From sequence record NC_070952.1: a stretch of DNA of 64,000 nucleotides, one strand, 5' to 3'. The notes under the pieces were generated by a model, which had not been told where the DNA came from, searched no databases, and saw only the letters and a program-made list of their open reading frames with translations. Every line of letters begins with the position of its first letter. The stretch's first letter is position 1. This document shows, one piece after another, positions 7,356 to 63,937 of the stretch. Position numbers and translations under genes: made by a program.

Positions 7356-7373
7356 ATATCATTTAAGTGTATA
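7356..7373 (+). promoter_or_regulatory. candidate phage early promoter motif
   Basis: ATATCATTTAAGTGTATA. Confidence 0.6.
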
Positions 7374-7419
7374 TGAACAATAATGTTCTCTCTCATTTAA
7401 ATAGGTTAAGGAATTAAAA

Positions 7420-8957: not shown

Positions 8958-8989
8958 ATGTATGTTCATTTACATTATTTTTTAGATTG

Positions 8990-9007
8990 ATATCATTACT
9001 ATGTACA
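8990..9007 (+). promoter_or_regulatory. candidate phage early promoter motif
   Basis: ATATCATTACTATGTACA. Confidence 0.5.
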
Positions 9008-9038
9008 ACTCACATTAATTTCATTAAGGACTTTAGAT

Positions 9039-15360: not shown

Positions 15361-15389
15361 CCTCTCTACTCCCAATGGGAGTAGAGAGG
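15361..15389. terminator. bidirectional terminator hairpin (TACTC family)
   Basis: CCTCTCTACTCCC-AAT-GGGAGTAGAGAGG between convergent genes. Confidence 0.7.
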
Positions 15390-25941: not shown

Positions 25942-25973
25942 TTCTTTTTAACCGGCCATTATGTTTGAGACTG

Positions 25974-25991
25974 ATATTATCAAAGTAGATA
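25974..25991 (+). promoter_or_regulatory. candidate phage early promoter motif (divergent match)
   Basis: ATATTATCAAAGTAGATA. Confidence 0.45.
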
Positions 25992-26040
25992 ACAGTGAAA
26001 TCTATTTCGATAATATTAATTAATAGACACGGAGTTATAA

Positions 26041-27006: not shown

Positions 27007-27033
27007 GTTACTCTACCCTTGAGGTAGAGTAAC
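27007..27033 (+). terminator. terminator hairpin (TACTC family)
   Basis: GTTACTCTACC-CTTGA-GGTAGAGTAAC then CATTATTTTTTTT. Confidence 0.7.
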
Positions 27034-28207: not shown

Positions 28208-28237
28208 TCCTACTCTACCCGATTGGGTAGAGTAGGA
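28208..28237. terminator. bidirectional terminator hairpin (TACTC family)
   Basis: TCCTACTCTACCC-GATT-GGGTAGAGTAGGA between convergent genes. Confidence 0.75.
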
Positions 28238-33500: not shown

Positions 33501-36500
33501 AATATCCAAGTCCTCTGTTCCAGTTTCATAATCCGCTGGATCATTATTGAAGATCTCGTCAACAGCCATTCCACCCAGCGCAGCGTAAGCAGATCCTTTT
33601 GCAAAGCGACCTAATTTACCGCCTCTTCTACGACCCGCTCCACGGTTACCAGCCCGGTTCCTTCTTCTAGCACCTTGACCACGTTGTTCAGGTTCAGGAC
33701 CTATCCCGCCGCCAGCACCTCGTCTTCCTCCGCCTAAAAGACCACCGGCCAGTTTAGTGAAGCCCCATTTCATGAGTTTGAAGATAGGAGAAGAAATCCC
33801 CATTACACCTGAGAAGAGTGCGGTACCAATTTTGGCTAACCGCCCAGTGGATTTCAGCAAGCTACCGAAGACCAGACTCCCGATTGTTCCGATAGGGTTT
33901 TTAAAGAGTTTGACACCAAAGCCACCTAACGCTAAGAACATGTCTTTGATCTTACCAAAGAACCCTTTGCTCTCGCCTTTCTCTTCTTCCCCACCCATGC
34001 CTTTGGTATTTTTAGCGATCTCAATGATAGCTTCATTTACCTTGTGCTTTTCTTCGGAAGCGGCTTCTTTCTTCTTCCACTCCAGTGAGTTAAGACGAAG
34101 ACCTGCACCATCAGAACCACCGGTCATTTTAGAACGGATTGCTTCAGTTAGGTTATCGGTTTCCATTGGGATACCGAAGTGCTGAGACATCATGCGGTAG
34201 ATCAAATCCAGTCGGTGTTCAACCCCAGAGTTTCCAGAGCCTTTCGAACCACCCACGCCGCCAGCGGCACTTCCTGGAGCAGTTGCTTGGCTTGAATAAC
34301 CAAATCGTCCCAAGAGTGAATTGAGTCCAGCTTTAGCCAACCCCGCTGCACCGCCAACCACGCCAGCAACACCAGCGCCCATATTGCGTACAGCCATACC
34401 TGAGGCCGTGACCAAACCTGATTTGTATTCCTCTTCACTAACCAGTTGATTACCTTGGTCATCATAGACTGGCCCATTGATCTCATTCCATCCAGTGATT
34501 GGTTTAAAGTTTCCTGATTCATCACGAGAGTAATATTCACCGGCTTTGAATTTCGCTGCCCTGAGAGCAGGTTCTTTCTGACCTTTAATATAAATGTCTT
34601 GTTGATAAACCAGATCTTTACCCGTGTCAATAATAGAACGAATACGGCCAAGAGGATCGGCAAGGTTATACGCACCCACAATGCCGTCACGCACACGACG
34701 CAGTCCATTCAACGCAACGGCACGACCATCAGCACCAAAGATCTTACCGGCCAGCTCACGCGCTCCAATGACCGCACGTGTTGCGGTATCGAAGATCGGT
34801 CCGCGAATGTCGTTCCACGTTTTAATAACCCGTCGAGTGGCAGCATCCAAATATTCACCTGCTTTTAACTTAGCAGATTTCAGAAGAGGTTCACCCTTTT
34901 CATCCAGGATATCCTCATCGTCATTTGGAGCAGCAGTAGACGTGTTACCGCTTCCGGTACGGTTACGACGTTGGTAGTGATCAACTGCAGCACCGAGTGC
35001 TAAACCGCCGGCGGCAAGCGCTCCTGAGAGCAGGAAGTTCTTACTAGTGGCAGCGGCACCTACGGCACCCAGAATCCCACCCAGGACCATTGGGTTGCGA
35101 CTCATGATGAAGTCCATCCCTCGACCCATCATTCCCGTTGGAAGCTTACTCTTGATTTTATCTAAGAAGGACTTTTTGGCTTGTTCTTCTTGACGTTCTT
35201 CAGAAGGTGTTCCCGCTGTTCCTGTGGTGAGTTTCCCTGCCTTGGCTAACTCCAGGAGACTTCCCATTAACGATTCGATATTCTTGCTGGTACTGAAAAT
35301 ACCGGCATTGCTATCTTTGATCTCAGTCAGTGCACCGGTCATGGTATCGAAATTAACCATTGAGGCGTTCTGACCAGGGGTCGCTTCTGGCTGCGGTTGG
35401 TTCAAGGTTCCCAGGCGTTCATTCAACTGCTGCAGGGTTTCGTTTAATCCGTCCATTGGGTTAACAGTCGGACTACTATTACCACTGGTACGCAGACCAC
35501 CTACCGTTGGGTTCTTTTTACCACCTTTCGGAAGGACACCACGCAGAGCAGGATCGTTCGGGTTATCCATGTATTGACCAATGCGGTCATGGAAAGCCTG
35601 ATTGTTGATCTTGTCAATGCCGTTCTCGGTATAGATCACTCCAATGTCACGGAGCATCTGTTCGTTACCGGTGGCACGCAACAAGTCAATACGTTCTGCT
35701 ACATTCGGGAAGTTGGACTTCAAGTTCTCTGCAGAAGCAGATGCGTTGTTCAGACGTTCACGGCCTTCTTTCGTTGGCATCTTGCTCATCTGTTTCATAC
35801 GCTGGAAACTATCAGAGCTGTTGAACGTGCTGACATCCTGAGTCGTAATACCAAAGTGACGCATCAGCGCAGCATGCACTTCCTTCTGAGCAGAAGGACT
35901 CATCCCTTTGATGTCGCCTAAATAGTAGTACGGGTTAAACCCCATCTCGGCATCAATGTCTTTCGCTACTTGCTGAGCAAACGCTTTACGAGTAGACGGA
36001 GACAAGAACTTATCAGGGTCAATAGAGTCAACCAGAGATAATGATGCTTGAGCGTAACGTTGGAATTCACCGTGAGGCATGAGGTCGGCTTGTACTGATA
36101 CACGACGTTGAGAATCCGTTTGGAATTCACCTCGCATATAGTTATAGCTTTCCGACTCTACATTGTCCTTTCCTGTGCGCATCTTTTCTAAGATCAAGTT
36201 TGTCTTAGAAATCAAACCCGGCAACACTTCGTTTAAGGTGATGTTGTTAAGTTCTTTCCAAATACCTGGCTGGTTAAGATCTTTAACATCACGTTTCTTC
36301 AACGTGTACTGTGTACCACGGGTTTTGTTTGCATCACCCATCAGTTTGTTAATGGCTTCTTTACCGCGGTTAGACGCAGCGTTCAGAGCCGTCCAAGCCG
36401 CTTTAGGAAGAGGTTTCTTACCCGGCGGTAATTCAGAGAGGTAATGTTCATAATCGGCATACTTCATTTCATCCATAGGCTGGTAGTTCTGAGCCATATA

Positions 36501-37730
36501 GTTCAACATCCCAGTACCTGATGTCGATGCGTATGAAATGACGTGACCCACATCAGTGAGCTTGTCGATTTGTTCCTTTATATACCCGGCTTGTTCTGGG
36601 TAGGTTTTTGACAACTTGTCAATGGCCTTTTTACCCGGACCCCGTGTAAAGAACGCAGGCAATTGATCCACCGCAACCCCAGCGATCATATTACCCAAGA
36701 TGTTGCCAACCAAACCGCGGGACAGAGACGTGTCACCGGCCATGTCAATACCATCACTGATATTGTTGGCAAGCGACCCTAATACCCCGTAAGCTTCCTT
36801 ACGGTTATCCGCACTGAACCTGTCACGGAACATTCCCGTCAGACCACCCATCCTTTTACCGACGGTATTAAAGACACGCTGACGCATATAAGCTTTCGAT
36901 GCGGTAAACGTGCTGGTCTTTTGGTAATCACTCATACCGGTGTATTTTGTGATTTTCTTCAGTTCGGTTACTTCGGCGTGAATGCCGGCTTCCATGAACT
37001 TGTAGAACTTGGCACTGTTCACATAAGAACGGGCAGTTAAGTTCAACTGGGCTTGCTGAATACGCGCATCAACATTACGTTGATAGTTAAGCATATCCCG
37101 CATTGCGCCTTCAATGTTCACCAACTGACGATTACCTGCCCCTATAGAAGCCTGTAACGCGCTGGTAGCAGCGACAGTCATTGAGTTAAGAGAATCACCC
37201 AATGAAACGAACATCCCCGACTGAGCGTTCATAGAGGTGTTTAACGCACCCTCTACATCATCTTCAGTTGTACTGTCAACACGTGCATCAAAACGATCAG
37301 ACCGTGTTTCAGACCTTTCCCACATGGAGAAATCTTTGGAACTGAAATTCCCCAATCCCTCACTCAGAAAACCTGGGAGTTTATCCCCCATCTTCTTATT
37401 TATGTGGGACGCAATGTTTTGCAAGGATTTCGCTGATTCCGCATTTTCTTCTCTGAACTCGGTAGCGAGCTGACCAAGACGATCATTAATGAATGATGCC
37501 TTGTCGAGCGCATTACTGAAGCTACTAGGTAAGATAGTGCGCATGCTTCGAAAACGGGCAGGGGAACTTCCCACTGTCTCGTCAACGACGCCTGATAAGA
37601 ATCCCGTTGCGAATGATCTTATAAAACCTTTTCCTTTGAATGGATCCATATCGAAATCCATATCAAAGTCCATATCGCCGCCAAAGGGATCATTATCCCA
37701 ATCGAGCCCGATATCGTAATCATCGGCCAT
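30516..37730 (-). CDS. large tail-associated protein with C-terminal GH19 lysozyme domain (phiKZ gp181 / OBP gp276-like)
   Basis: 2404 aa; ARKETGG...DGWDYRGRGLFQLTGKSNY...INGG; head-to-head with the vRNAP genes. Confidence 0.88.
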   Translation of the reverse strand: MADDYDIGLDWDNDPFGGDMDFDMDFDMDPFKGKGFIRSFATGFLSGVVDETVGSSPARFRSMRTILPSSFSNALDKASFINDRLGQLATEFREENAESAKSLQNIASHINKKMGDKLPGFLSEGLGNFSSKDFSMWERSETRSDRFDARVDSTTEDDVEGALNTSMNAQSGMFVSLGDSLNSMTVAATSALQASIGAGNRQLVNIEGAMRDMLNYQRNVDARIQQAQLNLTARSYVNSAKFYKFMEAGIHAEVTELKKITKYTGMSDYQKTSTFTASKAYMRQRVFNTVGKRMGGLTGMFRDRFSADNRKEAYGVLGSLANNISDGIDMAGDTSLSRGLVGNILGNMIAGVAVDQLPAFFTRGPGKKAIDKLSKTYPEQAGYIKEQIDKLTDVGHVISYASTSGTGMLNYMAQNYQPMDEMKYADYEHYLSELPPGKKPLPKAAWTALNAASNRGKEAINKLMGDANKTRGTQYTLKKRDVKDLNQPGIWKELNNITLNEVLPGLISKTNLILEKMRTGKDNVESESYNYMRGEFQTDSQRRVSVQADLMPHGEFQRYAQASLSLVDSIDPDKFLSPSTRKAFAQQVAKDIDAEMGFNPYYYLGDIKGMSPSAQKEVHAALMRHFGITTQDVSTFNSSDSFQRMKQMSKMPTKEGRERLNNASASAENLKSNFPNVAERIDLLRATGNEQMLRDIGVIYTENGIDKINNQAFHDRIGQYMDNPNDPALRGVLPKGGKKNPTVGGLRTSGNSSPTVNPMDGLNETLQQLNERLGTLNQPQPEATPGQNASMVNFDTMTGALTEIKDSNAGIFSTSKNIESLMGSLLELAKAGKLTTGTAGTPSEERQEEQAKKSFLDKIKSKLPTGMMGRGMDFIMSRNPMVLGGILGAVGAAATSKNFLLSGALAAGGLALGAAVDHYQRRNRTGSGNTSTAAPNDDEDILDEKGEPLLKSAKLKAGEYLDAATRRVIKTWNDIRGPIFDTATRAVIGARELAGKIFGADGRAVALNGLRRVRDGIVGAYNLADPLGRIRSIIDTGKDLVYQQDIYIKGQKEPALRAAKFKAGEYYSRDESGNFKPITGWNEINGPVYDDQGNQLVSEEEYKSGLVTASGMAVRNMGAGVAGVVGGAAGLAKAGLNSLLGRFGYSSQATAPGSAAGGVGGSKGSGNSGVEHRLDLIYRMMSQHFGIPMETDNLTEAIRSKMTGGSDGAGLRLNSLEWKKKEAASEEKHKVNEAIIEIAKNTKGMGGEEEKGESKGFFGKIKDMFLALGGFGVKLFKNPIGTIGSLVFGSLLKSTGRLAKIGTALFSGVMGISSPIFKLMKWGFTKLAGGLLGGGRRGAGGGIGPEPEQRGQGARRRNRAGNRGAGRRRGGKLGRFAKGSAYAALGGMAVDEIFNNDPADYETGTEDLDIGDADPVTGRHQTATDKVVNTVTDWLPQGSLAKSALQGVLGPDGYEKLDNIGLFWTSDGTFYTDRRKADAAQSALDGKPVINNAPGVEKAANKITTQRKIRLAMYGVHDTSSNLARRIMALENQLYQYVVIKDNKASLKPNTPTGKLVDDFANSGISKFNDKSAIGTWFMARFKPVFMIYNVAVATERMGDIVEFDNSKSYDAVKVVEQAQRGIASYNPPPYSIDVRIDDKEATMGPEQTRDAVAKLFDQLKKEMPAPPEKTPESMTADASAQAKQDNSQSGDTTSMPEIAITPGMDQKAAGASAQAVDDITSPADVTKIDISDMYGKDGNLDAFTLARLAVYGNDKSVPWRVEAVLRLERYTESFIMVTGKDARFTGKSNQLLELFKASFHVVDRNIISKNNWMIWFRDRFLPTLMEYCKQTVQLRGGIPGKTWRSLSDTNKAIIARKLLGLIVTVNDTQQPIWSVNASPFPDSDSGTYPDRADKYMKILDSKAKEAAIKDPELEKAKSEATSTSTPTATNGVGSDAQTKSIMDAVYGKGATGFASGGGPLRSSGGSSAAGGYYPNATMSAPGGPAGSAGQFMGNANQSFNPEFIKKAGSDKGIKMSLEQGDQLMLNHLVKAGFRDNKTLALALAMARKETGGYQSTVENTNWSAPTLLKYFKNIPDAATAQKVAAMSPVERAMYVYGRAPKGPALGNTKPEDGWDYRGRGLFQLTGKSNYEAFKKASGIDVVSHPELVSEDPNVMAESAVWFLKNSAAMKSIAKTGDFDTAVRGINGGNAVPATDERRAFYNDYLNKLRSGSLNIPGGDNADDASAQAGDQNAMNNQSPDVPEAADKNVPADKMGTGTETKVVKPGATGALLDQAEKSSAPSNAGTPPPTANASPMSSPVTSSGPASTNDNAPVTSSTSTDNPSGSPTAGASAPARTSTPTKTAAPASLAPTAPAPVPAINMPDQMNVADSVGAQINAQQLTVLKEIRDSLKRNGASQPIVKV

Positions 37731-43753: not shown

Positions 43754-44740
43754 ATGACCAACAGCGTTAAGGATGAATCGGTTCTCAAATCGTTACAGAC
43801 TTCGCTGGCAAAACTATCTCTCTACGGAGGCCGTGTTGACGGCCTCTTTGGAGACCTTTGTCGCAAAGCTGTGATTACCATGTTAAACAAAGCGTTCCCC
43901 TCGGTTAAGACCAGTACGCTTCCCGGAAACACGTATGACGCTAACTCGGTGTACACCTTTCTTCAAACTGGCCTTGCTCGTGCTGGTTTGTATACCATTA
44001 CTATTGATGGTAAGTGGGGCCCTACTTCTCAAGGTGCTTTTGACAAGTTATCCCTCGCCTACACTCAAGCGATTAAAAAGTCCAATGGAGAGACCATGCT
44101 TCCGCTACAACCAGCCACGGTAGTTCCCACTCATGTTAATGAAGCGCAACTCAAACTCATGCTGTCACAAGACGCTTGGGGTAAGATCGCTTCTCTCCTT
44201 GATCCGATGAATAAATGTATGGACATGTTCGACATTACATCTGGATTACGCAAAGCCCATTTCATGGCACAAATCCTTCACGAAACTGCTTCTTTTAAGT
44301 ACAGTGAAGAGATTGCCAGCGGTGCGGCTTATGAAGGTCGGGCTGATTTAGGGAACACCCAGCCGGGTGACGGTAAGCTTTTTAAAGGGCGCGGTTGGTT
44401 ACAACTTACTGGCCGTCTGAATTATTTGAAATGCGAAACGTTTCTTCGTCAGCATTTGAATGATCCTTCTATCGATCTTACTTCGTCTGCTACGGCTGCT
44501 GCACAAGTAGCCAACAATCCACTTTACTCCGCTTTGGCATCTGGATACTTCTGGGGTTACATTAAACCGAAGCTGAATCCCACTGCAGATAAAGACGATA
44601 TTTTCTGGGTTTCTGTTTATGTAAACGGTTGGGCTAAACAAGCTAAACCTTATTACCCGAATAAAGATCTGGAGCCAAACGGAATGGCAGACAGGGTTGC
44701 GAAGCTGGCGATTGCTAAACAAGCATTTGGTCTTATTTAA
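43754..44740 (+). CDS. modular endolysin: two PG-binding repeats plus GH19 catalytic domain (OBP gp279-like)
   Basis: VDGLFG, IDGKWGPTS, AHFMAQILHET, YEGRADLGN, FKGRGWLQLTGRLNY. Confidence 0.92.
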   Translation: MTNSVKDESVLKSLQTSLAKLSLYGGRVDGLFGDLCRKAVITMLNKAFPSVKTSTLPGNTYDANSVYTFLQTGLARAGLYTITIDGKWGPTSQGAFDKLSLAYTQAIKKSNGETMLPLQPATVVPTHVNEAQLKLMLSQDAWGKIASLLDPMNKCMDMFDITSGLRKAHFMAQILHETASFKYSEEIASGAAYEGRADLGNTQPGDGKLFKGRGWLQLTGRLNYLKCETFLRQHLNDPSIDLTSSATAAAQVANNPLYSALASGYFWGYIKPKLNPTADKDDIFWVSVYVNGWAKQAKPYYPNKDLEPNGMADRVAKLAIAKQAFGLI

Positions 44741-48040: not shown

Positions 48041-48068
48041 CTCTACTCTTCCCTAGGGAAGAGTAGAG
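48041..48068 (+). terminator. terminator hairpin (TACTC family)
   Basis: CTCTACTCTTCCC-TA-GGGAAGAGTAGAG then TTATGTTTG. Confidence 0.7.
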
Positions 48069-48772: not shown

Positions 48773-48789
48773 TATTTATTTTCAGGCTG

Positions 48790-48807
48790 ATATTATTAGA
48801 GTGTAAA
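48790..48807 (+). promoter_or_regulatory. candidate phage early promoter motif
   Basis: ATATTATTAGAGTGTAAA. Confidence 0.65.
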
Positions 48808-48834
48808 CTATATAAATATTTTTCTGGAGTTGTT

Positions 48835-53210: not shown

Positions 53211-53609
53211 ATGAAACTTGATGATCTGGTACATTTTCCAATGACAGGAAAGTCTAACTTTACTTTGGATGATATTCTCTTTATGGGTAGCGTTAAAACC
53301 CTAGTGATTGTCCAGAAATCCAAAGGTGAATCATCGGCAGAAGCACTGAAGAAAGAAATGAGTGAGTCTCGTAACTCGCGGGTTTCCAGTATTGTGGTGT
53401 ATTGCGTTCCGTCCGGTGAACCAAAGTTCGATTACAATCCTTTTAATTCGGGGGCTCCTATCTTATTTGAAGAGGTAGGATTAACCAGTGCTATTCTGCT
53501 TGATGTTGAACTCATGGTGATGGAAGAAGAAGGAAGGATGACAGTCATGCGTTATACTGATTTTCCTTCTACCATTGCGCTCTCTAAACGTTATTTTGGA
53601 CGACCATAA
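53211..53609 (+). CDS. hypothetical protein, degenerate alpha/beta family member
   Basis: AAGG RBS; KTLVIV...DVELMVM...TVMR. Confidence 0.65.
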   Translation: MKLDDLVHFPMTGKSNFTLDDILFMGSVKTLVIVQKSKGESSAEALKKEMSESRNSRVSSIVVYCVPSGEPKFDYNPFNSGAPILFEEVGLTSAILLDVELMVMEEEGRMTVMRYTDFPSTIALSKRYFGRP

Positions 53610-53860
53610 TGAAGAAGATTATTCTAGCTTTGTTGTTAGTGTCTGGGTTTGCAAGTGCGACTGTTAACACCATTGATAATATCAATGGTTCTGAAGGTCC
53701 GTATAAGTCCGGTCGCATTATTGTCCAACAAACGGGAGATGGAGATATTTATACTGATCAGAAAACTGGCTGTCAGTGGTATATCATCTCCACAGGTACA
53801 GATGCAAAAATAGACCTGGGTTGTTTCCCGGAGTTTATTTCTGAAGAATTCAAAAAGTAA
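53609..53860 (+). CDS. small secreted protein (DUF6440-like TDxxTGCQ motif)
   Basis: Signal peptide MKKIILALLLVSGFASA; YTDQKTGCQWY; two Cys. Confidence 0.7.
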   Translation: MKKIILALLLVSGFASATVNTIDNINGSEGPYKSGRIIVQQTGDGDIYTDQKTGCQWYIISTGTDAKIDLGCFPEFISEEFKK

Positions 53861-53881
53861 GTGCCATATATCTTCAAGTAG

Positions 53882-53899
53882 ATATTATTAACGTGAAGC
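53882..53899 (+). promoter_or_regulatory. candidate phage early promoter motif
   Basis: ATATTATTAACGTGAAGC. Confidence 0.5.
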
Positions 53900-53960
53900 T
53901 GAAAAGCTGGGAAGACGAATACGTACTTCCTTTATCTTCTTAACCTTAGTGAGAATAAAA

Positions 53961-55837: not shown

Positions 55838-56176
55838 ATGCTAAACGAATCCGTTTATTCTAACTTTGAAAAGACGTTTAGTTTGTTCTTAATGCGGTGT
55901 AACCAATTGGATATCGTTGCTCACGATAAGACTAATGCGTTTAAAGATTTAAGAAGGTTAATGCGCGGTGTTTGTAAAGGACCCATTAATCCACTGCTTT
56001 ATAAAAAGTTTGGAGTATCCAATCAGACATATTGTAATTCAAGTATGTGGTCACTGACTTTATCTAATCGCAATGGTGATCTATTATATTTAGATTCGGC
56101 CAATTACCCTTATTTCAAACACTGGATTCTTAATATCAAAACAGCTCCTACACTTAATATATGGAAGTGGTTATGA
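55838..56176 (+). CDS. small tandem-paralog family member 1
   Basis: LTLSNRNGDLLYLDSANYPYFKHWI. Confidence 0.6.
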   Translation: MLNESVYSNFEKTFSLFLMRCNQLDIVAHDKTNAFKDLRRLMRGVCKGPINPLLYKKFGVSNQTYCNSSMWSLTLSNRNGDLLYLDSANYPYFKHWILNIKTAPTLNIWKWL

Positions 56177-56532
56177 TGTATGAGACATTAAGTATCATCC
56201 GCATCATGGCTTGCGATAATAAGAAACGCATGCGACCTCGCAATATTAAAATGCGGGAAGTGGATAAAGAGTTTGCTCGCATTATCAAAACAGTTCGCTT
56301 AGGGAAACCTGTTGCTAAGACTGGGTACATGTACCTTAAGGTGACCGAGAAACGTGAGGGAGATCATGGGTGGGAACTTCACCTTCAGGCTTTCAATACC
56401 CATGGTTCAAAAGTGATCATCAATCGTTCTAATTGGAGTGATTTCAAAAATTGGGTAGAGGGGCGTGGTTGGAACTTCATCTGTAAACCATCTACCATGG
56501 AACAATGGAATCGTGATTATGGACAAAAATGA
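56161..56532 (+). CDS. small tandem-paralog family member 2
   Basis: DKEFARII...HGSKVIINRSNWSDFKNWV; true start may be 56173 or 56176. Confidence 0.65.
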   Translation: MEVVMMYETLSIIRIMACDNKKRMRPRNIKMREVDKEFARIIKTVRLGKPVAKTGYMYLKVTEKREGDHGWELHLQAFNTHGSKVIINRSNWSDFKNWVEGRGWNFICKPSTMEQWNRDYGQK

Positions 56533-57097
56533 ACACGTCAAACACAAACGCAAAATCGTTGTCCCACCACCTGGTTTAATAGGATTCATTTCAAGCCACC
56601 GTCTCACTCCTGTCAAGAGATTAACAGGGGGTAAGTTAGTCCCCACTGAAAAATACTTGTTGGACGTGAAGTTATGTTTCTTCTGGCCAAGCTCATATGT
56701 CGAGATTCATAACAACGCTGATGAAGACCTGATGTTATCCTTCAATGCTTATCTTGATAAAATCAAAATGATCAGGGTAATGTGTGAGGATATGGTCGAA
56801 CATCTGAATACTGGTAAGGGTCCTTTCGTTAGACGTGAGTTTCTTAATGACGCGACAATTAACGATGGGTTTGGTGGAACACTGTTTATGACAGCTGATC
56901 CAGATCATCCAACCAACTATTGTATCTTTGAAGTGTCTAGCTGTTATAAGAAATATCGACACAGTGGAACACCGAGCGTTTTAAAGAAATACCTTAAAGA
57001 TCTAATCTCTTTTATTAACGATGCGGAAACAGACCTCGTCCTTATAAAAGAAAAGATTGATCAAACTTTGTTGGAGAAAAAGAAGGATGAAAAGTGA
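56519..57097 (+). CDS. hypothetical protein, paralog of 58373..58972
   Basis: RREFLN...FEVSSCYKK...LISFINDA. Confidence 0.65.
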   Translation: MDKNEHVKHKRKIVVPPPGLIGFISSHRLTPVKRLTGGKLVPTEKYLLDVKLCFFWPSSYVEIHNNADEDLMLSFNAYLDKIKMIRVMCEDMVEHLNTGKGPFVRREFLNDATINDGFGGTLFMTADPDHPTNYCIFEVSSCYKKYRHSGTPSVLKKYLKDLISFINDAETDLVLIKEKIDQTLLEKKKDEK

Positions 57098-57416
57098 CTT
57101 CTACAAAAATCTGGGATTGATCGTGGCGAGCTCAATACAAGACTCGCCCAGACCGATCACAGATAAACGAAAGCTCAATGAAATAAAGGGAGAGTTAAGG
57201 AATATCTCCAGGGTCTTTCTTTCGGGTGGACGAAGTCTGATAAAGAGCGATTATTTCAAGATTACACCGGGGCGTGATTTATTCATACTCTCCTCTCTTT
57301 CTGGAGGAAACGGGGTGGTCATTAATAAATCAAATGTTCAATTGTTAACGGACTGGGTTGAGCATGGCTCTAAACCGTTAACCCTTGCTGCGTGGAAGAT
57401 AACGTATGGAAAGTGA
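57087..57416 (+). CDS. small tandem-paralog family member 3
   Basis: MKSDFYK; GNGVVINKSNVQLLTDWV. Confidence 0.65.
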   Translation: MKSDFYKNLGLIVASSIQDSPRPITDKRKLNEIKGELRNISRVFLSGGRSLIKSDYFKITPGRDLFILSSLSGGNGVVINKSNVQLLTDWVEHGSKPLTLAAWKITYGK

Positions 57417-57864
57417 TTTTTATAAAAAGTTGGCCAAGTTACGGGTCTACACAGTTAACTCCGTGTTAGAGCGTTCTAAACGCTCCTCTAAGCAAGTCTC
57501 AGAGGACTTCGATAAAGAACTGACTCGTATTGCCAATTCGATTCAGAATGGCTACACGTTGGGCGCACAGCGTATGTCGGCTATGGGTGAGTTATATCGC
57601 CCTTATAAGTATTTGAACGTCACCATGACATCCATTAACCACCCCGAGTTAAGTGTGGTTCAACCGGACAGAAAGTGGAAGAATATTTATAAACCTACAC
57701 ACCCGCCTGCTATCTGTGTGGTAATTACTCGTGGTTCAGTTTCGGTAACGGTAACTGATGAAACAATCAGCAAATTGATCGCGTGGTCCAAGTCCTGGCG
57801 TAAACAGAAACCTACTACGTTTGAGGAATGTGAACAAGATCATTTCTATCAGCAATGGTGGTAA
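57406..57864 (+). CDS. small tandem-paralog family member 4
   Basis: MESDFYK; FDKELTRI; SVTVTDETISKLIAWS. Confidence 0.65.
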   Translation: MESDFYKKLAKLRVYTVNSVLERSKRSSKQVSEDFDKELTRIANSIQNGYTLGAQRMSAMGELYRPYKYLNVTMTSINHPELSVVQPDRKWKNIYKPTHPPAICVVITRGSVSVTVTDETISKLIAWSKSWRKQKPTTFEECEQDHFYQQWW

Positions 57865-57865
57865 T

Positions 57866-58372
57866 ATGAATAATGATCAACTCAAGACTTTTATGACCAA
57901 TCTCGATTATCTTCGGGAAAGGTCATGTCTTGCATTTGTTCACCAAGGAATTACATTTGATCAGATCTTTGACTTATTGGATAAAGAGTTCAAAATAGCT
58001 AATTGTGCTTTGAAATCCAAAATCAAACCTGACTATGTATTCAAGGTGATAAAGGTTGATTTCCGTAAACTCCGCTACCACTCTATTACTATTTCAAGTC
58101 AGTTAGGGTTTACCATGATTCTGAAGAAAGAACACATGGGGTACTTTAACAGCTGGGTGGTTTCAGAGAACGACAGGAAAGCGGTGGGATTCCGAAGTTG
58201 GATGGAGATCGGAAAGACTATCTATAAAGCCATTGACGGAGATGGTGATTGGTCAGTTAGCGATGAGCTGAGAATCAGACATAAGAAAGGGTCTTCAATG
58301 ATGTACAATGGCGAGGTAGAAAAATATCACGTCATGGTTGATAAAGCGAATCGTACATTGGGACTTAAATAA
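57866..58372 (+). CDS. small tandem-paralog family member 5
   Basis: LDKEFKI; GFTMILKKEHMGYFNSWV. Confidence 0.65.
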   Translation: MNNDQLKTFMTNLDYLRERSCLAFVHQGITFDQIFDLLDKEFKIANCALKSKIKPDYVFKVIKVDFRKLRYHSITISSQLGFTMILKKEHMGYFNSWVVSENDRKAVGFRSWMEIGKTIYKAIDGDGDWSVSDELRIRHKKGSSMMYNGEVEKYHVMVDKANRTLGLK

Positions 58373-58972
58373 ATGGCCTGGGTTAAACGCACATTCAAAC
58401 GGGACTGGTTACAACGGTCCCCGTCTCTTAATACTGTCTCTTATCGGCATGAGTTGTCCAATACCACGGTGTGGACAATAAAGCCTGAGAAAGCAGACAG
58501 CGAACCTTCTTTGTTGACGCAGGATGATTATTATCCTCATGAACAAATGTTCGCGATCTTTGAACTGACCTTTGGGATTGGTTCTCAGATTGTTAAGTTG
58601 CATGCCAATAACAACATCGGTGTGACGGATGCATTAAAAGATTATACCCGCAAGCTTGAACAGCTCCGGGATCTTTTGGGTCAGTTTCTCTCCAGTTACA
58701 AAGACTATTACGATATGAGCAAAGTGTTTGTATTGAAAGAGTTTTTGAATACAACGACGGGACCTTCTGCCGTGTACACGTCAATGATCGCTATTGGAAC
58801 TTCGGTGTCTCATGACTTCTTCTTTGACATTGCTTCTTGCGAAGACAAAGCAAGACTTTATGAAACTAAAGAAAGAGATTTTGTTGAACTGATCATCAAA
58901 CTCAATAAGTTTATTACTTCTGCCATAACGGATGCAAAGACAGCGATGGAAACTTATAAAGGTCGCCTTTGA
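58373..58972 (+). CDS. hypothetical protein, paralog of 56519..57097
   Basis: LKEFLN...FDIASCEDK...LNKFITSA. Confidence 0.7.
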   Translation: MAWVKRTFKRDWLQRSPSLNTVSYRHELSNTTVWTIKPEKADSEPSLLTQDDYYPHEQMFAIFELTFGIGSQIVKLHANNNIGVTDALKDYTRKLEQLRDLLGQFLSSYKDYYDMSKVFVLKEFLNTTTGPSAVYTSMIAIGTSVSHDFFFDIASCEDKARLYETKERDFVELIIKLNKFITSAITDAKTAMETYKGRL

Positions 58973-58997
58973 TTTAGTTCCATTGCTGTTCAGCTCT

Positions 58998-59015
58998 ACA
59001 TTATTACAGTGTAAA
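58998..59015 (+). promoter_or_regulatory. candidate phage early promoter motif
   Basis: ACATTATTACAGTGTAAA, about 28 nt upstream of the exported-protein array. Confidence 0.6.
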
Positions 59016-59042
59016 TCCCACTTAAATTTTAAAGGTATTGTA

Positions 59043-59591
59043 ATGAAAAAGTTAATTTCTATTCTGATGTTTGCGGTTGTTCTGTTCTCTGGTTACGCTG
59101 TAGCCGAAGTTAATAAAGCCGGCTGGATGCCTGTTAGTTCAGTCAGCACTGGTCAACTTATCGGGATGACCAACATTGGTTCTCACGGCGGTGAGCTGAC
59201 TCTGCTGTGTGATGTCAAAACACACAAGTTACGCATGGACTATAAAGGCGGTGAAAATCGTTACGACTTGTTCGTATTCTACACCGGCGATAATCCAGAC
59301 ATGACTTCCCCAGACCTCAACGGTAAATTCATCGTTGGTATGAACAGTACAACCCAGGGTCAGGTTTATTATAATGTTCTGAAGGCAAAAGAAACCTTCG
59401 TGATCGCTCGATTCCCGATGGGTTCTGGTGCGAAATACCTTCGCGCGCTGGCCATTGGAAATGAGAATATACCTGAGATCCAACAAGAAGGCGATGAGTC
59501 TTTCTTTGCGGGTTCTGCGATGCGTGAGATGCTGCATGAACTGAGTACCTCATGTCCAGTTAACCAAAACAAAGATCAAGCCGTTTTTTAG
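59043..59591 (+). CDS. exported two-Cys paralog 1 (Sec signal peptide)
   Basis: MKKLISILMFAVVLFSGYAVA; LTLLCD; STSCP. Confidence 0.75.
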   Translation: MKKLISILMFAVVLFSGYAVAEVNKAGWMPVSSVSTGQLIGMTNIGSHGGELTLLCDVKTHKLRMDYKGGENRYDLFVFYTGDNPDMTSPDLNGKFIVGMNSTTQGQVYYNVLKAKETFVIARFPMGSGAKYLRALAIGNENIPEIQQEGDESFFAGSAMREMLHELSTSCPVNQNKDQAVF

Positions 59592-59674
59592 TTGGATGAA
59601 ATAACAGGTATACATAATCAAATTGACTTTAAGCCTTGCGGCCTTTGTGTTGTAGCGTTTAATAAAGGGTGTGC

Positions 59675-60268
59675 ATGAAACGTTTGATCCTGTTACTTGT
59701 TATCGCCTGTTTTACCATGAAGTCATTCGGGCAAAAACCCGGCGTGTACATCAACCAGATCGCCCCCTATCCACGGTTTGATGTATTTGGTACTTTAGGT
59801 CGAACACAAATTACGTACACCAACGGTGATGATAAAAATCCTGAATACTTCATTATTACTTGTGATAAGAACAAGCAAGAAATGAACGTGATGTATTACA
59901 TCACACATGAAGGATTCCAAATCACCGATGCCAATTATTTCACTATTCAAAAGTATCCTCAAAGGTGGTTGAAGATGACCCCTCCTTATCATGCCCCATC
60001 GGCAGTTATTTACGATGCAGGTATGGGCGGTGATGGTAAGTATCTTGTTGCTGCTTTAAGGGGACTGCTGAATGACAGTGATTGGGGTGTGGTTATTACT
60101 TTTGAAACGTACGTTAATGAACACGACATCATTACACAAGCGTGGTCCGACATTATTCCCTCAGAAATACTCAAGCGTGATATCACTTCATCCGACCTGA
60201 GTATCTGTGAGACAACGAAATTTAATTCCATTTTACCTTTAGTGAGTTTCTCAAATGAAAATCCGTAA
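59675..60268 (+). CDS. exported two-Cys paralog 2 (Sec signal peptide)
   Basis: MKRLILLLVIACFTMKSFG; FIITCD; LSICE. Confidence 0.72.
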   Translation: MKRLILLLVIACFTMKSFGQKPGVYINQIAPYPRFDVFGTLGRTQITYTNGDDKNPEYFIITCDKNKQEMNVMYYITHEGFQITDANYFTIQKYPQRWLKMTPPYHAPSAVIYDAGMGGDGKYLVAALRGLLNDSDWGVVITFETYVNEHDIITQAWSDIIPSEILKRDITSSDLSICETTKFNSILPLVSFSNENP

Positions 60269-60884
60269 TCTGTTTTATTTCATCTGTTTTTCCCTGATGT
60301 GTTCAGGCTTCGCAATGGCAGCGTCTTATGACGTGAAAGAAGATGTGAAACAACCGGCACTCGTTGCTGACCTGGCTTCAGTTTCTGCAGACAAGGTAAT
60401 GTCAGGTATTGCTGATATCACTCTGACCCTGAAGAACTCTGAAACCAATACCACGCAGCGTGTTGTGTTGCAGTGCGATACTACCCAACAGACCATCACC
60501 TCGTTCTATTACCTGAATGATGTACTGGGTGGGAAAGCCAAAGGTGCAACCGGGTTCCAGGTGAACGTTTATGACGGACCAGAGGCCGGCTATAAACACA
60601 ATGGTGACGTCAAACTCTTTGACAGTTCTAAAGATAAAGACAACCTGCGTAAATCCTTTGATCGAATGAAGAAATTAAACGGCGTGGGATTCATGTCATT
60701 TGAGTTCTTTGAAACCACTAATGGTATTGATCATAATCCAGTCGCTCACTCTATGTTACTCTCCAGCAGTTATCTGAAGAAAATTCTGGCAGCGATGGAT
60801 GAGTTCCCGGATGTGGACGGCTGCAGTATTAATGGCGGCGCGGTTTCAGTCTACCCATTAAAGAACCTGACTGATTCCATTTAA
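60255..60884 (+). CDS. exported two-Cys paralog 3 (Sec signal peptide)
   Basis: ...LMCSGFAMA; VVLQCD; VDGCS. Confidence 0.75.
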   Translation: MKIRNLFYFICFSLMCSGFAMAASYDVKEDVKQPALVADLASVSADKVMSGIADITLTLKNSETNTTQRVVLQCDTTQQTITSFYYLNDVLGGKAKGATGFQVNVYDGPEAGYKHNGDVKLFDSSKDKDNLRKSFDRMKKLNGVGFMSFEFFETTNGIDHNPVAHSMLLSSSYLKKILAAMDEFPDVDGCSINGGAVSVYPLKNLTDSI

Positions 60885-60917
60885 CGCTTCCAATTACCTT
60901 AGCGAGAAACATAAGAA

Positions 60918-61505
60918 ATGAAGAAAATGTCCAAATGGCACTGGGCTCTTGTGGGGATGACAGCCATCATTGTCATTGGTGTATTGTCAGGGCCTACCGG
61001 AGTGGTGGATAAGTACAAAACCCCTGAAGTGGCAAAAGTGGTAACACCGGACAGCGATCCAACCGATCTGATTGTACCACTTTCATTTCAGTTTCCTAAT
61101 TTAAACGCTAAGGTGGAAATGCGCTGTATTGATCCAAGTACAACCCACAGTGGGTTCTCTTGGGATGTGTCAAGTCTGGATAAGAAAAACCCACCACCGG
61201 CGACAAAGATTTTCTTTAACTTTGCCAAGTCTAAAAGAGATCCACTGGTTGCATCAGGTTGGCGGGGGATTCAATCTCCTAATGACAAGCTTCCTATGGG
61301 AGATGCATTTATGCTGACTGCGATACAGTTGAAAGACGCTGGGTCACAAAGCTATAACCACTATGTGTTTGCAGTTGCAAGTTCATTAGAGGCGGTACGC
61401 AATGTGTCTCAGGAAGATGTGGTTTATGTTCCTGTTGGTGTGGTGTCAATGATATCCACTACCACGATGACATCAAACCCGTGCTCCACGCTACAAACCA
61501 ATTAA
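60918..61505 (+). CDS. exported two-Cys paralog 4 (N-terminal signal anchor)
   Basis: WALVGMTAIIVIGVL; VEMRCID; SNPCS. Confidence 0.7.
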   Translation: MKKMSKWHWALVGMTAIIVIGVLSGPTGVVDKYKTPEVAKVVTPDSDPTDLIVPLSFQFPNLNAKVEMRCIDPSTTHSGFSWDVSSLDKKNPPPATKIFFNFAKSKRDPLVASGWRGIQSPNDKLPMGDAFMLTAIQLKDAGSQSYNHYVFAVASSLEAVRNVSQEDVVYVPVGVVSMISTTTMTSNPCSTLQTN

Positions 61506-61507
61506 AC

Positions 61508-61539
61508 TAACTCTACTTCCTTAACGGGAAGTAGAGTTA
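61508..61539 (+). terminator. terminator hairpin (TACTC-like family)
   Basis: TAACTCTACTTCC-TTAACG-GGAAGTAGAGTTA. Confidence 0.65.
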
Positions 61540-61569
61540 ATCTATTCATTTCTTTTAGGATCTTTCTGT

Positions 61570-62232
61570 ATGAAAAAGTTAGTTTACGGTGTTATGGTAG
61601 TTATGATGTTTTTATTGGTTGGTTGCGATAAAGACAATAACGAAATTGACATGAGCAAAAGTTCGACTGCGAAATCCCATTACAATGAGGAAGATGTTTA
61701 TGGTCCAATCGTGCATGTGGGTGTTATCGCGGATAACGTGGTAATCAAGAATCTCAAATACAGCGAGGACTTGTATACCTACGCAATCGGGATTAAAGCG
61801 GACAAGCCGCATAACGCCGTGGTTGGGTTAATCTGCGATCATCGTTTAAACGGCGCCGCCATTACCTATTCAATTAAAAATGATGACGGGGTGGTACCTA
61901 ATGGTCGGGTTGATATTTCAATTATGAAATACCGTCCAGGAGTAAAGGATATTCGTGAAGCGGATGAAGATGCAGACCCGGTATTCTCCACCGCTAACGG
62001 CGACACCGATTTCTTAGCCGGGGCGCGTAAAGCTGCAGGACTTCCTGCAGATACCATGCTTGCTTTTGTCATTGACAAGGATCAAGAAGACGGATCGTCT
62101 AAAGGGGTTGCCTGGACTTCTCTCTTCACAGCCAAGCAATTAGACAAAGCGTTATCAGGAACCAAAGATAAATGTGGGAGTCTAAAATTGGATTTGAACG
62201 ACACCTACATCGTAGCAGCAAAGGACTCATAA
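61570..62232 (+). CDS. lipoprotein, exported two-Cys paralog 5
   Basis: Lipobox LLVG|C-D; VGLICD; KDKCG. Confidence 0.78.
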   Translation: MKKLVYGVMVVMMFLLVGCDKDNNEIDMSKSSTAKSHYNEEDVYGPIVHVGVIADNVVIKNLKYSEDLYTYAIGIKADKPHNAVVGLICDHRLNGAAITYSIKNDDGVVPNGRVDISIMKYRPGVKDIREADEDADPVFSTANGDTDFLAGARKAAGLPADTMLAFVIDKDQEDGSSKGVAWTSLFTAKQLDKALSGTKDKCGSLKLDLNDTYIVAAKDS

Positions 62233-62247
62233 CGTAATCCTTTGACG

Positions 62248-62271
62248 GTAGAGTGCGATATCGCACTCTAC
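62248..62271 (+). terminator. perfect palindrome/terminator (inverted TACTC-like arms)
   Basis: GTAGAGTGCGATATCGCACTCTAC then T-rich tract. Confidence 0.65.
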
Positions 62272-62316
62272 TTCTTCTTTCCTTTACTTTTTTTCATTAA
62301 AATAATAAATAGATCG

Positions 62317-62334
62317 ATATTATTATGTTGATAC
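62317..62334 (+). promoter_or_regulatory. candidate phage early promoter motif (divergent match)
   Basis: ATATTATTATGTTGATAC. Confidence 0.45.
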
Positions 62335-62362
62335 TATATACATGTTATAAAGGAAACTATAG

Positions 62363-63079
62363 ATGGAAAATGTTATCTCCCTTGATGAGGAAAAAATGCG
62401 TGCAGATGAAGAATGGGCTAAACTGTTCGATCATCGCATCCAAAAAGAATTCCTTCGTCACTGTGTATATTCCATTTCTCTGAATGATCCAGCACATAAC
62501 TTGAATCACGTGATGGACGTGTGTAAGTTAGCAAAACGAATCTGTGCTGAAATTAATTTGGGAGAACGGGATACCCTACTGGTTTACGTTGCATGTTTAC
62601 TTCACGACATCGGCTGTCGATATGAACGGTCACAGCATCATTTGATAGGTTACGGACTCACCTACGAAATCATCGATCGTATCTGGTCTGATGAGTTTGA
62701 TGATGATGAAGTAATGACTATCGCAACCGCGGTACTGGAACACCGTAGTTCCAATAAACAAAAACCCAGCTCTTTGATCAGTTCTATTGTTAGTGTGGCG
62801 GATAGTGGCGCACCAGATTTTGCCAAATACGTACGTCGTGCGGTTCAATTCCGTCTCAAGAGAAACACGGACGTGGTAGTCATCGTGGAGGATGTCTACG
62901 AACATCTATTAGAGAAATTCGGTGCCGAAGGGTATCACTGGAAAAGCTACCCGGTAATTGGTATGGATTTCTTTAAAAAGGAATGGGATGATTTTTCTGA
63001 GAAACTGTGCGATGAAAAGAGCGCTCTAGAATTGATAAGGGCAACCTATATCGCTCTAGGAGGAGGTAGTGTTACGTAA
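62363..63079 (+). CDS. HD-domain metal-dependent phosphohydrolase
   Basis: AHNLNH, LLHDIG, LEHR, VAD. Confidence 0.88.
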   Translation: MENVISLDEEKMRADEEWAKLFDHRIQKEFLRHCVYSISLNDPAHNLNHVMDVCKLAKRICAEINLGERDTLLVYVACLLHDIGCRYERSQHHLIGYGLTYEIIDRIWSDEFDDDEVMTIATAVLEHRSSNKQKPSSLISSIVSVADSGAPDFAKYVRRAVQFRLKRNTDVVVIVEDVYEHLLEKFGAEGYHWKSYPVIGMDFFKKEWDDFSEKLCDEKSALELIRATYIALGGGSVT

Positions 63080-63530
63080 CCCAACTGACTGGTTGATGTT
63101 AGCATGTACGGTATTGGCCATTTTAACTGTGGTCGGTGGTGGAGCTTGGTGGTGGGTTCGTGACATCCCAGCTGCGCAACATAAGTTAAGTTGGCATCAG
63201 GTACTTGTTAATCGGTTTCATTTATCACTGATTGACGATCGTTCCCGATACTGGACGCTTGACATTCTCTACAATGAGAATATAGATTCATCCACCTACA
63301 CTGTTAAAGGTGATCGACATTTAAGTATCCAACTACCGCCGAATGCTTCATTTCGTGATTACGTTTACTTGATCAGGCACTTGGAAGGGGTTCATGAGAA
63401 CTTTGTCGCAATGGCAGAAGGTGTTATTGAAGAGACCAAACTTAAGCGTCTTTATTTGACTAAAGAGGATCTTTCTCTCTTTAGAGAATTCAAAAGGAAT
63501 TTACTGCTGAAGGTACTATTGAAACGATGA
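63069..63530 (+). CDS. N-terminally membrane-anchored protein
   Basis: GGAGG RBS with GTG start; WLMLACTVLAILTVVGGGAWWW. Confidence 0.65.
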   Translation: MLRNPTDWLMLACTVLAILTVVGGGAWWWVRDIPAAQHKLSWHQVLVNRFHLSLIDDRSRYWTLDILYNENIDSSTYTVKGDRHLSIQLPPNASFRDYVYLIRHLEGVHENFVAMAEGVIEETKLKRLYLTKEDLSLFREFKRNLLLKVLLKR

Positions 63531-63937
63531 TAACAATCCTGCTTTTCTTTATACTGTTCTTGATGGCCATGGGAATCGGGTATGTCATGGATGGGGTAAG
63601 AAAATACAAGATCAGTTGTCACGAAACCAGCGACAGTTTTGTCATTCTTTATAATGACAGAAGGATTGTTGTCTCTGGAAAACCCAATACCCGGCTGTGC
63701 ACTTATCGTTGGAAAGGGAAAATAGAAACACTCACCTTTCCAATTATAGATGGTGTGAATCCTCTTGACCAAGTTGAACATTTTATCTCTCGGTATAAAA
63801 CCAGTCGACTTTCCAGATATCTTTTTGATTTCACCAGTATGAAAGAACCTGCTAATTTATTAGCGTTCGATTCGGTGAATGGGAAGGTGTTATCCGAGAT
63901 ACAATTGAAGTTGAAAAGTTATATCAGAAACGCTTAA
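63527..63937 (+). CDS. N-terminally membrane-anchored protein
   Basis: ATGA overlap; MITILLFFILFLMAMGIGY. Confidence 0.65.
   Translation: MITILLFFILFLMAMGIGYVMDGVRKYKISCHETSDSFVILYNDRRIVVSGKPNTRLCTYRWKGKIETLTFPIIDGVNPLDQVEHFISRYKTSRLSRYLFDFTSMKEPANLLAFDSVNGKVLSEIQLKLKSYIRNA

Follow-up and report, generated by a model that had tools for sequence, protein, structure and literature searches.

Phage T4 encodes Spackle (Sp) and Imm, small exclusion proteins that are made early from single-copy genes and act in the periplasm or at the inner membrane. The Llp protein of phage T5 and the Cor family are short outer-membrane lipoproteins that block the receptor used by the phage itself. The bacterial lysozyme inhibitors PliC and MliC, each of about 100 amino acids (aa), are soluble and lipid-anchored paralogues of one periplasmic fold. 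It is well established that jumbo phages of the phiKZ and OBP type shield their DNA within the infected cell, and to our knowledge almost nothing is known about their effects on the cell envelope. Here we describe an array of five adjacent genes, AH04_288 to AH04_292 (g1 to g5 below), located in the right-hand 64 kb of the genome of Erwinia phage AH04 (MZ501267.1, 262,639 bp, genus Meadowvirus, host Erwinia billingiae). This whole stretch of 64,000 nucleotides (nt) is referred to as the window; it is 100% identical to the AH04 record, and a window coordinate equals the MZ501267.1 coordinate minus 198,639. The array is probably a clade-specific operon of exported paralogues that share two conserved cysteines, with early transcription suggested by a promoter motif, and we tentatively propose that its products guard the envelope of the infected cell.

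Each of the described systems resembles the array in part. Spackle and Imm are like the array products in being phage-encoded and targeted to the periplasm or inner membrane, and under the function proposed here both would act from the infected cell against phages arriving later. The array is unlike them in having three to five members, built as two-cysteine domains of 160-200 aa, in lacking sequence similarity to them, and in the predicted structure of g5, which matches no Protein Data Bank (PDB) entry at E<0.1. Llp and Cor are phage-encoded lipoproteins with a lipobox that alter the envelope of the infected cell, as is predicted for g5. Unlike them, g5 carries an Asp at position +2, and in many of its orthologues a hydrophobic anchor appears to replace the lipobox, which points to the inner membrane; nor does g5 have a match to them in family or fold. 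With PliC and MliC the array has in common a small periplasmic fold that comes in soluble and lipid-anchored versions, but the array is phage-borne and its fold is a different one, without a Foldseek or HMMER match to PDB entries. Phage proteins that are exported early and work on the envelope have been described before, and the array is probably of this known kind. New here is the family; the multi-paralogue arrangement, the mixed anchoring and the fold would set it apart.

The five genes follow one another on the + strand, and the open reading frame (ORF) list and the GenBank record agree on their positions. The first, g1 (AH04_288, family A), spans 59043..59591 and encodes 182 aa, of which 161 remain in the mature protein. 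It is followed by g2 (AH04_289, 59675..60268, 197 aa), a paralogue that defines a type of its own (g2 type), g3 (AH04_290, family B, 60255..60884, 209 aa), g4 (AH04_291, family C, 60918..61505, 195 aa) and g5 (AH04_292, family E, 61570..62232, 220 aa). The 3' end of g2 overlaps the start of g3 by 14 nt. All five are labelled 'hypothetical protein' in the GenBank record. An earlier note on this DNA, made from the sequence alone, had described five consecutive genes of 182-220 aa, each with an N-terminal export signal, and this arrangement is seen in both the ORF list and the AH04 record. Behind g5, the array is closed by a terminator-like hairpin followed by a T-rich run (62247..62272, + strand, -18.6 kcal/mol, z -6.1). 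The five genes very likely form one transcription unit that reaches from a clade-specific AT-rich motif in front of g1 to this strong hairpin.

The feature that unites the five proteins is a pair of cysteines. In the mature part of each protein we found exactly two, at positions 56 and 171 in g1 (spacing 115), 63 and 178 in g2 (spacing 115), 74 and 190 in g3 (spacing 116), 70 and 189 in g4 (spacing 119) and 89 and 202 in g5 (spacing 113). The only further cysteines are C12 inside the signal peptide of g2, C11 and C16 inside that of g3, and the lipobox cysteine C19 of g5. The claim of the earlier note that each mature protein has exactly two cysteines was therefore borne out, with a distance of 113-119 residues between them, and the motifs it had quoted around the first (LLCD, ITCD, LQCD, MRCID, LICD) and the second (TSCP, SICE, DGCS, NPCS, DKCG) are all present. 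As a control, the other annotated window proteins of 150-260 aa were scanned for exactly two cysteines after residue 35 at a spacing of 99-123. None of these 25 proteins showed the pattern, and since all the array proteins do, it is more than a chance occurrence. Across 20 genomes, exactly two mature cysteines were counted in 84 of 84 non-redundant array proteins, at a spacing of 99-123 residues and mostly 110-120, and the same pattern recurred in all eight further members found on two distant metagenomic contigs. In every member of families A and C the spacing was 110-119. Because both cysteines are invariant, the mature parts contain no other cysteine and the proteins are predicted to lie in the oxidising periplasm, the two most likely form a single disulfide, which would tie the central beta-strand to the C-terminal tail.

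Pairwise BLASTP among g1-g5 gave nothing significant. This result meant that sequence alone gives a shared pattern and not homology, and that a call of paralogy needed profile and structure evidence. For comparison of the family profiles with hhalign, each core was trimmed to begin 32 residues ahead of its first conserved cysteine, which excluded the signal peptides. Family B scored 98.5% against family E and 95.8% against the g2 type, and the g2 type scored 94% against family E. We then used a deep B/E/g2 alignment of 57 sequences, collected from the window proteins, a word-index search and a HMMER profile search of 1.84 billion representatives. This deep profile matched family A at 85% (E 6e-6) over the strands around the first cysteine, with that cysteine aligned; with other hhalign settings, the match extended over the whole length with both cysteines aligned, at 37%. 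Against family C, without signal peptides, the deep profile reached 2.3% (p=0.02) in a collinear alignment that kept both cysteines in register, and families A and C scored 3.6% against each other. We conclude that g2, g3 and g5 are certainly one family, that g1 very probably belongs to it, and that g4 is probably a divergent member of the same family, the most divergent of the five.

Structure prediction provided the second line of evidence. AlphaFold2 modeled g5 (residues 19-220, with a 57-row alignment) at a predicted local distance difference test score (pLDDT) of 94.4 and a predicted template modeling score (pTM) of 0.89. In this model, two short N-terminal helices are combined with a beta-rich domain of about ten strands and further short helices. 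Of the two conserved cysteines, the first ends a strand in the centre of the domain, and the other follows the last helix at a distance of six residues. When the g5 model was compared with 350,542 PDB chains using Foldseek, the best E value was 0.12, and the template modeling (TM) score was at most 0.34 among the 50 matches listed. The family fold, as modeled, is confidently predicted and matches no solved structure, and a fold of this kind points to an undescribed phage module of the bacterial periplasm. A comparison with IalB/VasI-like folds had been suggested in advance and is not supported, since the g5 model had no PDB match at Foldseek E<0.1; lysozyme-inhibitor and Spackle-like folds were rejected as relatives by the same threshold. 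Against the viral structure library BFVD, the g5 model gave 11 matches at E<=0.001, all of 182-235 aa, and the identifiable ones come from jumbo phages of the OBP-like clade. The best of them, G9I9N9 (235 aa, TM 0.89), is OBP gp306 as judged from its length and accession series alone. A 197-aa entry of the AH04 accession series, probably g2 itself, had a TM score of 0.69 to the g5 model. The g4 model is less sure (pLDDT 77.6, pTM 0.73) because only 12 close sequences stand behind it. From its first cysteine onward, it repeats the order of elements found in g5, namely a strand carrying the cysteine, two more strands, a helix, two strands, a helix and the second cysteine. In BFVD the g4 model retrieved itself, then the 161-aa orthologue from OBP, then entries of families B and E at TM scores of 0.30-0.43. 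Six of the 11 BFVD entries that matched g5 were also among the top 35 of the g4 model in a search of the whole library.

If the five genes were not paralogues, then g2, g3 and g5 would be one family, and g4, possibly together with g1, would be unrelated exported proteins that arrived at the two-cysteine layout by convergence within a cluster of secreted genes. The lack of significant pairwise BLASTP matches, the 2.3% of family C against the B/E/g2 profile, the 3.6% between A and C and the TM scores of only 0.30-0.43 between the g4 model and B/E entries are what such an arrangement would give, and a 182-aa BFVD entry, probably g1, reached only TM 0.30 to the g5 model. We consider it quite unlikely all the same. 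The cysteine spacing is equal (110-119) in all members of A and C, both cysteines fall in the same columns of collinear hhalign alignments, and family A reaches 85% against the deep profile over the strands around the first cysteine. The order of elements common to the g4 and g5 models and the six BFVD entries that they share in the whole library argue in the same direction. The earlier claim of one scaffold thus stands for g2, g3 and g5 (hhalign 94-98.5%, TM 0.69) and is probable for g1 (85%), and it is the link to g4 that is weak.

We searched phage genomes with g1 and g5 by tblastn and found orthologues only in jumbo phages, with genomes of 234-285 kb. These comprise Kosakonia phage Kc263, Klebsiella phage N1M2, Serratia phages Yubaba and Sureiya, Pseudomonas phage OBP, Shewanella phage SXP01, Pantoea phage Survivor and Edwardsiella phage pEt-SU, as well as Aeromonas phages of the PS1/ZPAH34/CF8 group. 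Synteny of the array extends over 22 genomes of OBP-like jumbo phages, with three to five copies in each. These comprise phages that infect Erwinia, Kosakonia, Klebsiella, Serratia, Edwardsiella, Pantoea, Pseudomonas, Shewanella and Aeromonas, together with metagenomic contigs of jumbo-phage size. Wherever the locus is annotated, the left border is a homologue of AH04_287 (~200 aa) and the right border is a gene for an HD-domain phosphohydrolase (HD below). Where the sequence continues, two small genes follow the HD gene, and where it is long enough, tail tube and tail sheath genes come next on the opposite strand. The same layout was repeated in contigs from IMG/VR, JGI, ENA and Logan, of up to 279 kb. 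All the distant matches of the profile search came from metagenomic contigs of jumbo-phage size, and no cellular homologue appeared in the HMMER profile search of 1.84 billion representatives. By these searches, the protein family is very likely confined to OBP-like jumbo phages.

Within the array, the order of slots is kept. Family A orthologues are present in 22 of 22 genomes and always come first, family E always comes last, and family B is nearly always present. A, B and E are therefore three near-universal lineages of the array. The middle slots vary between phages, being filled in some lineages by family C and the g2 type, the latter in AH04-like genomes and two distant contigs. N1M2, Kc263 and PS1 have three copies, Yubaba and SXP01 have four, and OBP and AH04 have five; one orphan copy each was found in OBP, pEt-SU and CF8. 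The OBP genes gp302-gp306 and the orthologues in N1M2, Kc263, Yubaba/Sureiya, pEt-SU, Survivor, SXP01 and the Aeromonas group are like the AH04 genes in their slot, the two-cysteine pattern, the export signals and the promoter motif, and they differ from AH04 in copy number and in the content of the middle slot. Several short ORFs (53-136 aa) without the family pattern occupy the middle slot in one metagenomic contig and in some of the Aeromonas phages (L025:6325-6582, L026:6330-6587, L027:4485-4880 and L030:5503-5913).

The outer members of the array diverge quickly. Between AH04 and the metagenomic relative IMGVR1, amino acid identity was 45% for family A and 55% for family E, compared with 79% for the gene upstream of the array and 83% for HD. 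Between AH04 and OBP, the corresponding values were 29%, 36%, 62% and 66%. Families A and E are thus far more diverged than the flanking genes in the same relatives, and B and the g2 type are intermediate. Fast divergence of A and E together with a copy number of 3-5 is consistent with a role at an interface or in an arms race.

Directly in front of the array, on the + strand at 58989..59015, lies a copy of the predicted-early promoter motif of the OBP/N1M2 type (TTCAG..TACATTATTA.AGTGTAAA), which ends ~28 nt before the start codon of g1. It belongs to an AT-rich intergenic motif found window-wide, of about the form TTCAG-N3-4-GATATTAT(T/C)-N3-GTGTA. A partial pattern of the motif had seven matches in the window, all on the + strand and all intergenic, where 1.44 were expected, and none of 100 shuffles reached seven. 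Of 21 relatives checked, 16 have the motif ahead of their first array gene. Among the other five, the gene start assumed for Kc263, IMGVR1, IMGVR2 and IMGVR4 lay too far upstream for a full copy to show, and OERK01000028.1 has a degenerate copy only. The predicted promoter of N1M2 (31 sites) and the OBP motif are the same as the AH04 motif, and the OBP motif was judged early because it heads early-type operons (PMC7058600). According to a review, in those phiKZ-like phages for which transcript data exist, a detectable AT-rich motif always proved to be an early promoter, read by the virion RNA polymerase (PMC7598289). The 'candidate early promoter' of the earlier note is accordingly a true instance of the clade's predicted early promoter motif, as defined by the OBP/N1M2 consensus (PMC7058600, PMC7598289), and from the motif and the analogy with these phages we infer that the array is expressed early. 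A literature search for a transcriptome or functional study of the OBP-like clade found none. Promoters of the host type (sigma-70) were not invoked, a sigma-70 scan having done no better than shuffles.

Further copies of the motif, all intergenic and on the + strand, lie at ~268-300, 3416-3445, 7347-7378, 8981-9010, 25965-25995, 48781-48810, 53873-53900 and 62308-62335, and the genes behind them include a ClpP-like protease and the HD phosphohydrolase. The copy at ~62308-62335 comes after the closing hairpin of the array and precedes the HD gene. Inside the array, the gap between g4 and g5 contains a perfect 14-bp hairpin with a T-rich tract downstream (61508..61539, + strand, -20.3 kcal/mol, z -5.3), possibly an attenuator, a terminator or a processing site. 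A stem core of CTCTAC...GTAGAG is common to intergenic hairpins at 15364-15386, 27011-27029, 28213-28232, 48041-48068, 61511-61536 and 62247-62272, several of which lie between convergent genes or past gene ends. They look like a phage-specific family of terminators or processing sites.

Export signals were read from the N-termini by rules, that is by signal-peptide and lipobox patterns. The marks of Sec export with cleavage by signal peptidase I are a positively charged N-terminus, a hydrophobic core of about 10-15 residues and small residues at -3 and -1. A cleavable signal peptide was seen in g1 (AVA/E, the slash marking the cleavage site), in g2 (SFG/Q, with AxA sites in g2 orthologues) and in g3 (AMA/A, where the mature protein begins with the conserved sequence ASYD(V/I)KED). 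The rule-based scan found AxA cleavage sites in 16 of 20 members of family A and 16 of 19 members of family B. In family A, a GW pair after the signal peptide is invariant, as are both cysteines. The N-terminus of g4 has a hydrophobic stretch of 17-19 residues followed by SGP, without a canonical AxA; V and S at positions -3 and -1 offer a weak possible site. Outside the AH04-like lineage, three of four family C members (OBP, SXP01 and Survivor) have a possible signal-peptidase site, which is a clear AxA in OBP only, and the Yubaba orthologue shows no such site. By these patterns, g4 carries either a signal anchor or a weakly cleavable signal. The lipobox of g5 reads LVGC, in line with the pattern [LVI][ASTVI][GAS]C of Lgt/LspA substrates, with the lipidated position at Cys19 and Asp20 at +2, and its N-terminus matches the signal regions of NCBIfam lipoprotein families. 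A lipobox was found in 49 of 67 distinct family E orthologues, with Asp at +2 in 32 of these 49. Most of the 18 sequences outside the lipobox pattern have an apparently uncleaved hydrophobic N-terminus and come mainly from Aeromonas-type phages, and among the 18 the pattern missed at least one near-canonical lipobox (P0033).

Asp at +2 is the retention signal that keeps lipoproteins of Enterobacterales in the inner membrane by Lol avoidance. Since g5 has this residue, and since the Aeromonas-type orthologues of g5 have an apparently uncleaved hydrophobic N-terminus in place of the lipobox, the location indicated is the periplasmic face of the inner membrane and not the outer membrane. We therefore predict that g5 and family E are tethered at this face. 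The proteins of families A, with g1, and B are predicted to be soluble in the periplasm. The mature domains are acidic (isoelectric point (pI) 4.8-6.1) and hydrophilic. The proposal that the anchor types differ within the array holds under the rules for g1-g3 as cleavable Sec-type proteins and for g5 as a lipoprotein, with g4 left between a signal anchor and a weak cleavage site. The associated idea of different envelope positions survives in reduced form. Anchoring does differ, and the positions reduce to soluble in the periplasm versus tethered to the inner membrane, as indicated by Asp +2 and the apparent anchors of the orthologues.

Searches of family libraries placed the array outside described families. 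Scans of g1-g5 against Pfam, PHROGs, NCBIfam and PADLOC gave matches at the level of the signal peptide only, and profile hidden Markov model (HMM) searches of PDB sequences gave nothing. When all 57 sequences of the deep alignment were scanned with Pfam, no family common to them emerged, and the DUF7933, DUF11, pectinase and RcsF models were unmatched at E<=0.1. The family was thus rightly taken to be undescribed, having no match in Pfam, PHROG, NCBIfam, PADLOC or PDB. Two product names in the Kc263 record, 'adhesin' for its family A member (L002:4935-5549) and 'putative exopolygalacturonase' for its family B member (L002:5643-6266), are unsupported by the family searches. Giant DUF7933/DUF11 adhesins were among the matches of the profile search in 1.84 billion representatives, which we rejected as artefacts of summing over repeats, with at most 13.7 bits per repeat. 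The repeats are alike to a segment of ~48 residues of the array family (strand, turn, strand and second cysteine), and their summed HMMER E values go down to 1e-18. They differ in that no single repeat exceeds 13.7 bits and the Pfam models stay unmatched, so that the likeness is local and homology is not supported. With the misleading Kc263 labels corrected, the family is now defined well enough for curation, even without an assigned function.

The array can be described as a defined, conserved and probably early exported module, with three ancient lineages and a variable middle. For its function, we ranked envelope guarding or superinfection exclusion first, followed by inhibition of host periplasmic enzymes or stress sensing, control of lysis, and a role in the virion or as an adhesin. 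Phage proteins that act at the envelope against competitors or host functions are typically exported early, diverge fast and vary in copy number, and it was this combination that placed an early periplasmic module for envelope guarding or superinfection exclusion at the head of the list, as a tentative inference only. Under this reading, the proteins would be made within minutes of infection from the early-type promoter and would fill the periplasm and cover the inner membrane on its outer face. Their targets there could be the tail tip, the lysins or the ejection apparatus with which further phages of this clade arrive, or else parts of the envelope that Gammaproteobacteria have in common. 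Soluble and tethered paralogues would then have different targets, or the soluble ones would assemble on the tethered one. Three lineages have persisted across hosts of four orders, which implies that the targets are either conserved in all these bacteria or are parts of the phage clade. By analogy with T4 Spackle, a target of the latter kind could be the tail lysins of later-arriving relatives.

For the whole explanation, that is the anatomy of the array together with a role in envelope guarding or superinfection exclusion, we estimate a probability of roughly 0.4. Several results weigh against it. As compared with the PDB by Foldseek, the fold of g5 is unlike known exclusion proteins or enzyme inhibitors. 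In N1M2, the motif also lies ahead of some structural and lysin genes, and it is early by prediction only (PMC7058600). The membership of g4 rests on weak evidence, namely synteny, the cysteine pattern, the order of elements, a profile match at p=0.02 and Foldseek matches of low TM score. A value of 91.9% in hhalign for the deep profile against family C had to be discarded, since signal-peptide columns inflate it and 2.3% remains without them. That lineages A, B and E have been kept in phages whose hosts span four bacterial orders fits a housekeeping task in the cycle of the clade itself as well as it fits exclusion. If the proteins do exclude competitors or control envelope enzymes, then the array would explain how slow-growing phages guard the infected cell from outside, and it would add a new fold to the known periplasmic binders.

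In the nearest competing explanation, the array proteins act in the periplasm to inhibit or modulate envelope enzymes of the host, for example peptidoglycan hydrolases, proteases or envelope-stress sensors. Wall and membranes would thereby stay intact, or stress signalling would be silenced, over a long infection cycle, with soluble and tethered versions like PliC and MliC. The localization signals, which indicate the periplasm and the face of the inner membrane, the acidic soluble mature domains (pI 4.8-6.1) and the early-type promoter all agree with such a role, and lineages that persist over four host orders fit targets that all Gammaproteobacteria have kept. Against it, A and E diverge fast, which is unexpected for proteins that bind highly conserved host enzymes. 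In addition, the g5 model has no structural likeness to known inhibitor families in the PDB, and no catalytic or inhibitor motif was recognized in the family scans. We regard this explanation as possible but doubtful.

A more specific proposal is that the soluble A and B proteins join the tethered E protein in a clade-specific hetero-oligomeric periplasmic complex with a fold that no solved structure has shown so far, which would seal or rewire the interface between periplasm and inner membrane within minutes of infection. Rival jumbo phages might thereby be stopped at the level of DNA ejection or of their tail lysins, or the complex might seize an envelope machine that is conserved universally, and the variable middle copies (g2 and family C) would then be exchangeable specificity modules. 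We consider this unlikely; if true, phage systems for envelope control would gain a new structural class.

A part in the phage's own lysis and not against competitors or the host, with the proteins serving as periplasmic timing sensors or regulators or as components of a non-canonical spanin-like system, appears improbable. One member tethered to the inner membrane among soluble periplasmic ones, a module that is core to the clade, and the small N-terminally anchored proteins AH04_294/295 encoded just downstream and conserved in relatives are all compatible with it. The models, however, are beta-rich and globular, and resemble neither the coiled coil of an i-spanin nor the short proline-rich o-spanin. 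Also, o-spanins are outer-membrane lipoproteins and g5 carries the residue for inner-membrane retention, and the promoter is of the predicted early type. Membership in the spanins themselves was rejected, since the g4 and g5 models show globular domains built mainly of beta-strands, in which two or three short helices occur, and the lipoprotein has 201 aa after processing, with Asp at +2. Virion-associated or adhesin-like proteins are the least credible reading and very improbable, since, against the Kc263 labels 'adhesin' and 'putative exopolygalacturonase', the tail tube and sheath genes nearby and the whole-protein HMMER matches to giant DUF7933/DUF11 surface proteins, there stand the composition of those matches as sums of many repeats of at most 13.7 bits, the absence of Pfam matches to DUF7933, DUF11 or pectinase among the alignment members, the location of the tail genes on the opposite strand, the export signals and early-type promoter, and the labelling of OBP gp302-306 as 'hypothetical protein' in a record that uses 'virion structural protein' elsewhere.

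The surroundings of the array contain further genes of interest. On the 3' side of the HD gene, AH04_294 (63069-63530) and AH04_295 (63527-63937) each start with a hydrophobic membrane-spanning stretch. Both are kept in most relatives, with an identity of 22-48% outside the AH04-like lineage, and family searches with them found no match. Given these N-terminal anchors and the conservation, the envelope-directed gene set may reach beyond the five genes. The stretch directly upstream of the array, at 55838-58972, is taken up by another series of small genes (AH04_281-287), whose translations look related to one another and carry no export signal. Several have similar W-rich C-termini, and AH04_283 and AH04_287, of ~200 aa each, share a C-terminal pattern. 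AH04_277 (53609-53860) encodes 83 aa with a signal peptide and two cysteines. A Kc263 gene of the same size at the corresponding position is labelled 'outer membrane lipoprotein RcsF', and neither it nor AH04_277 has a Pfam match. Two wall-degrading proteins are also encoded in the window, AH04_261 (30516-37730, - strand), an annotated endolysin of 2,404 aa with a GH19 domain, and AH04_264 (43754-44740), a transglycosylase. By analogy with T4, both could in principle be targets for a Spackle-like exclusion protein.

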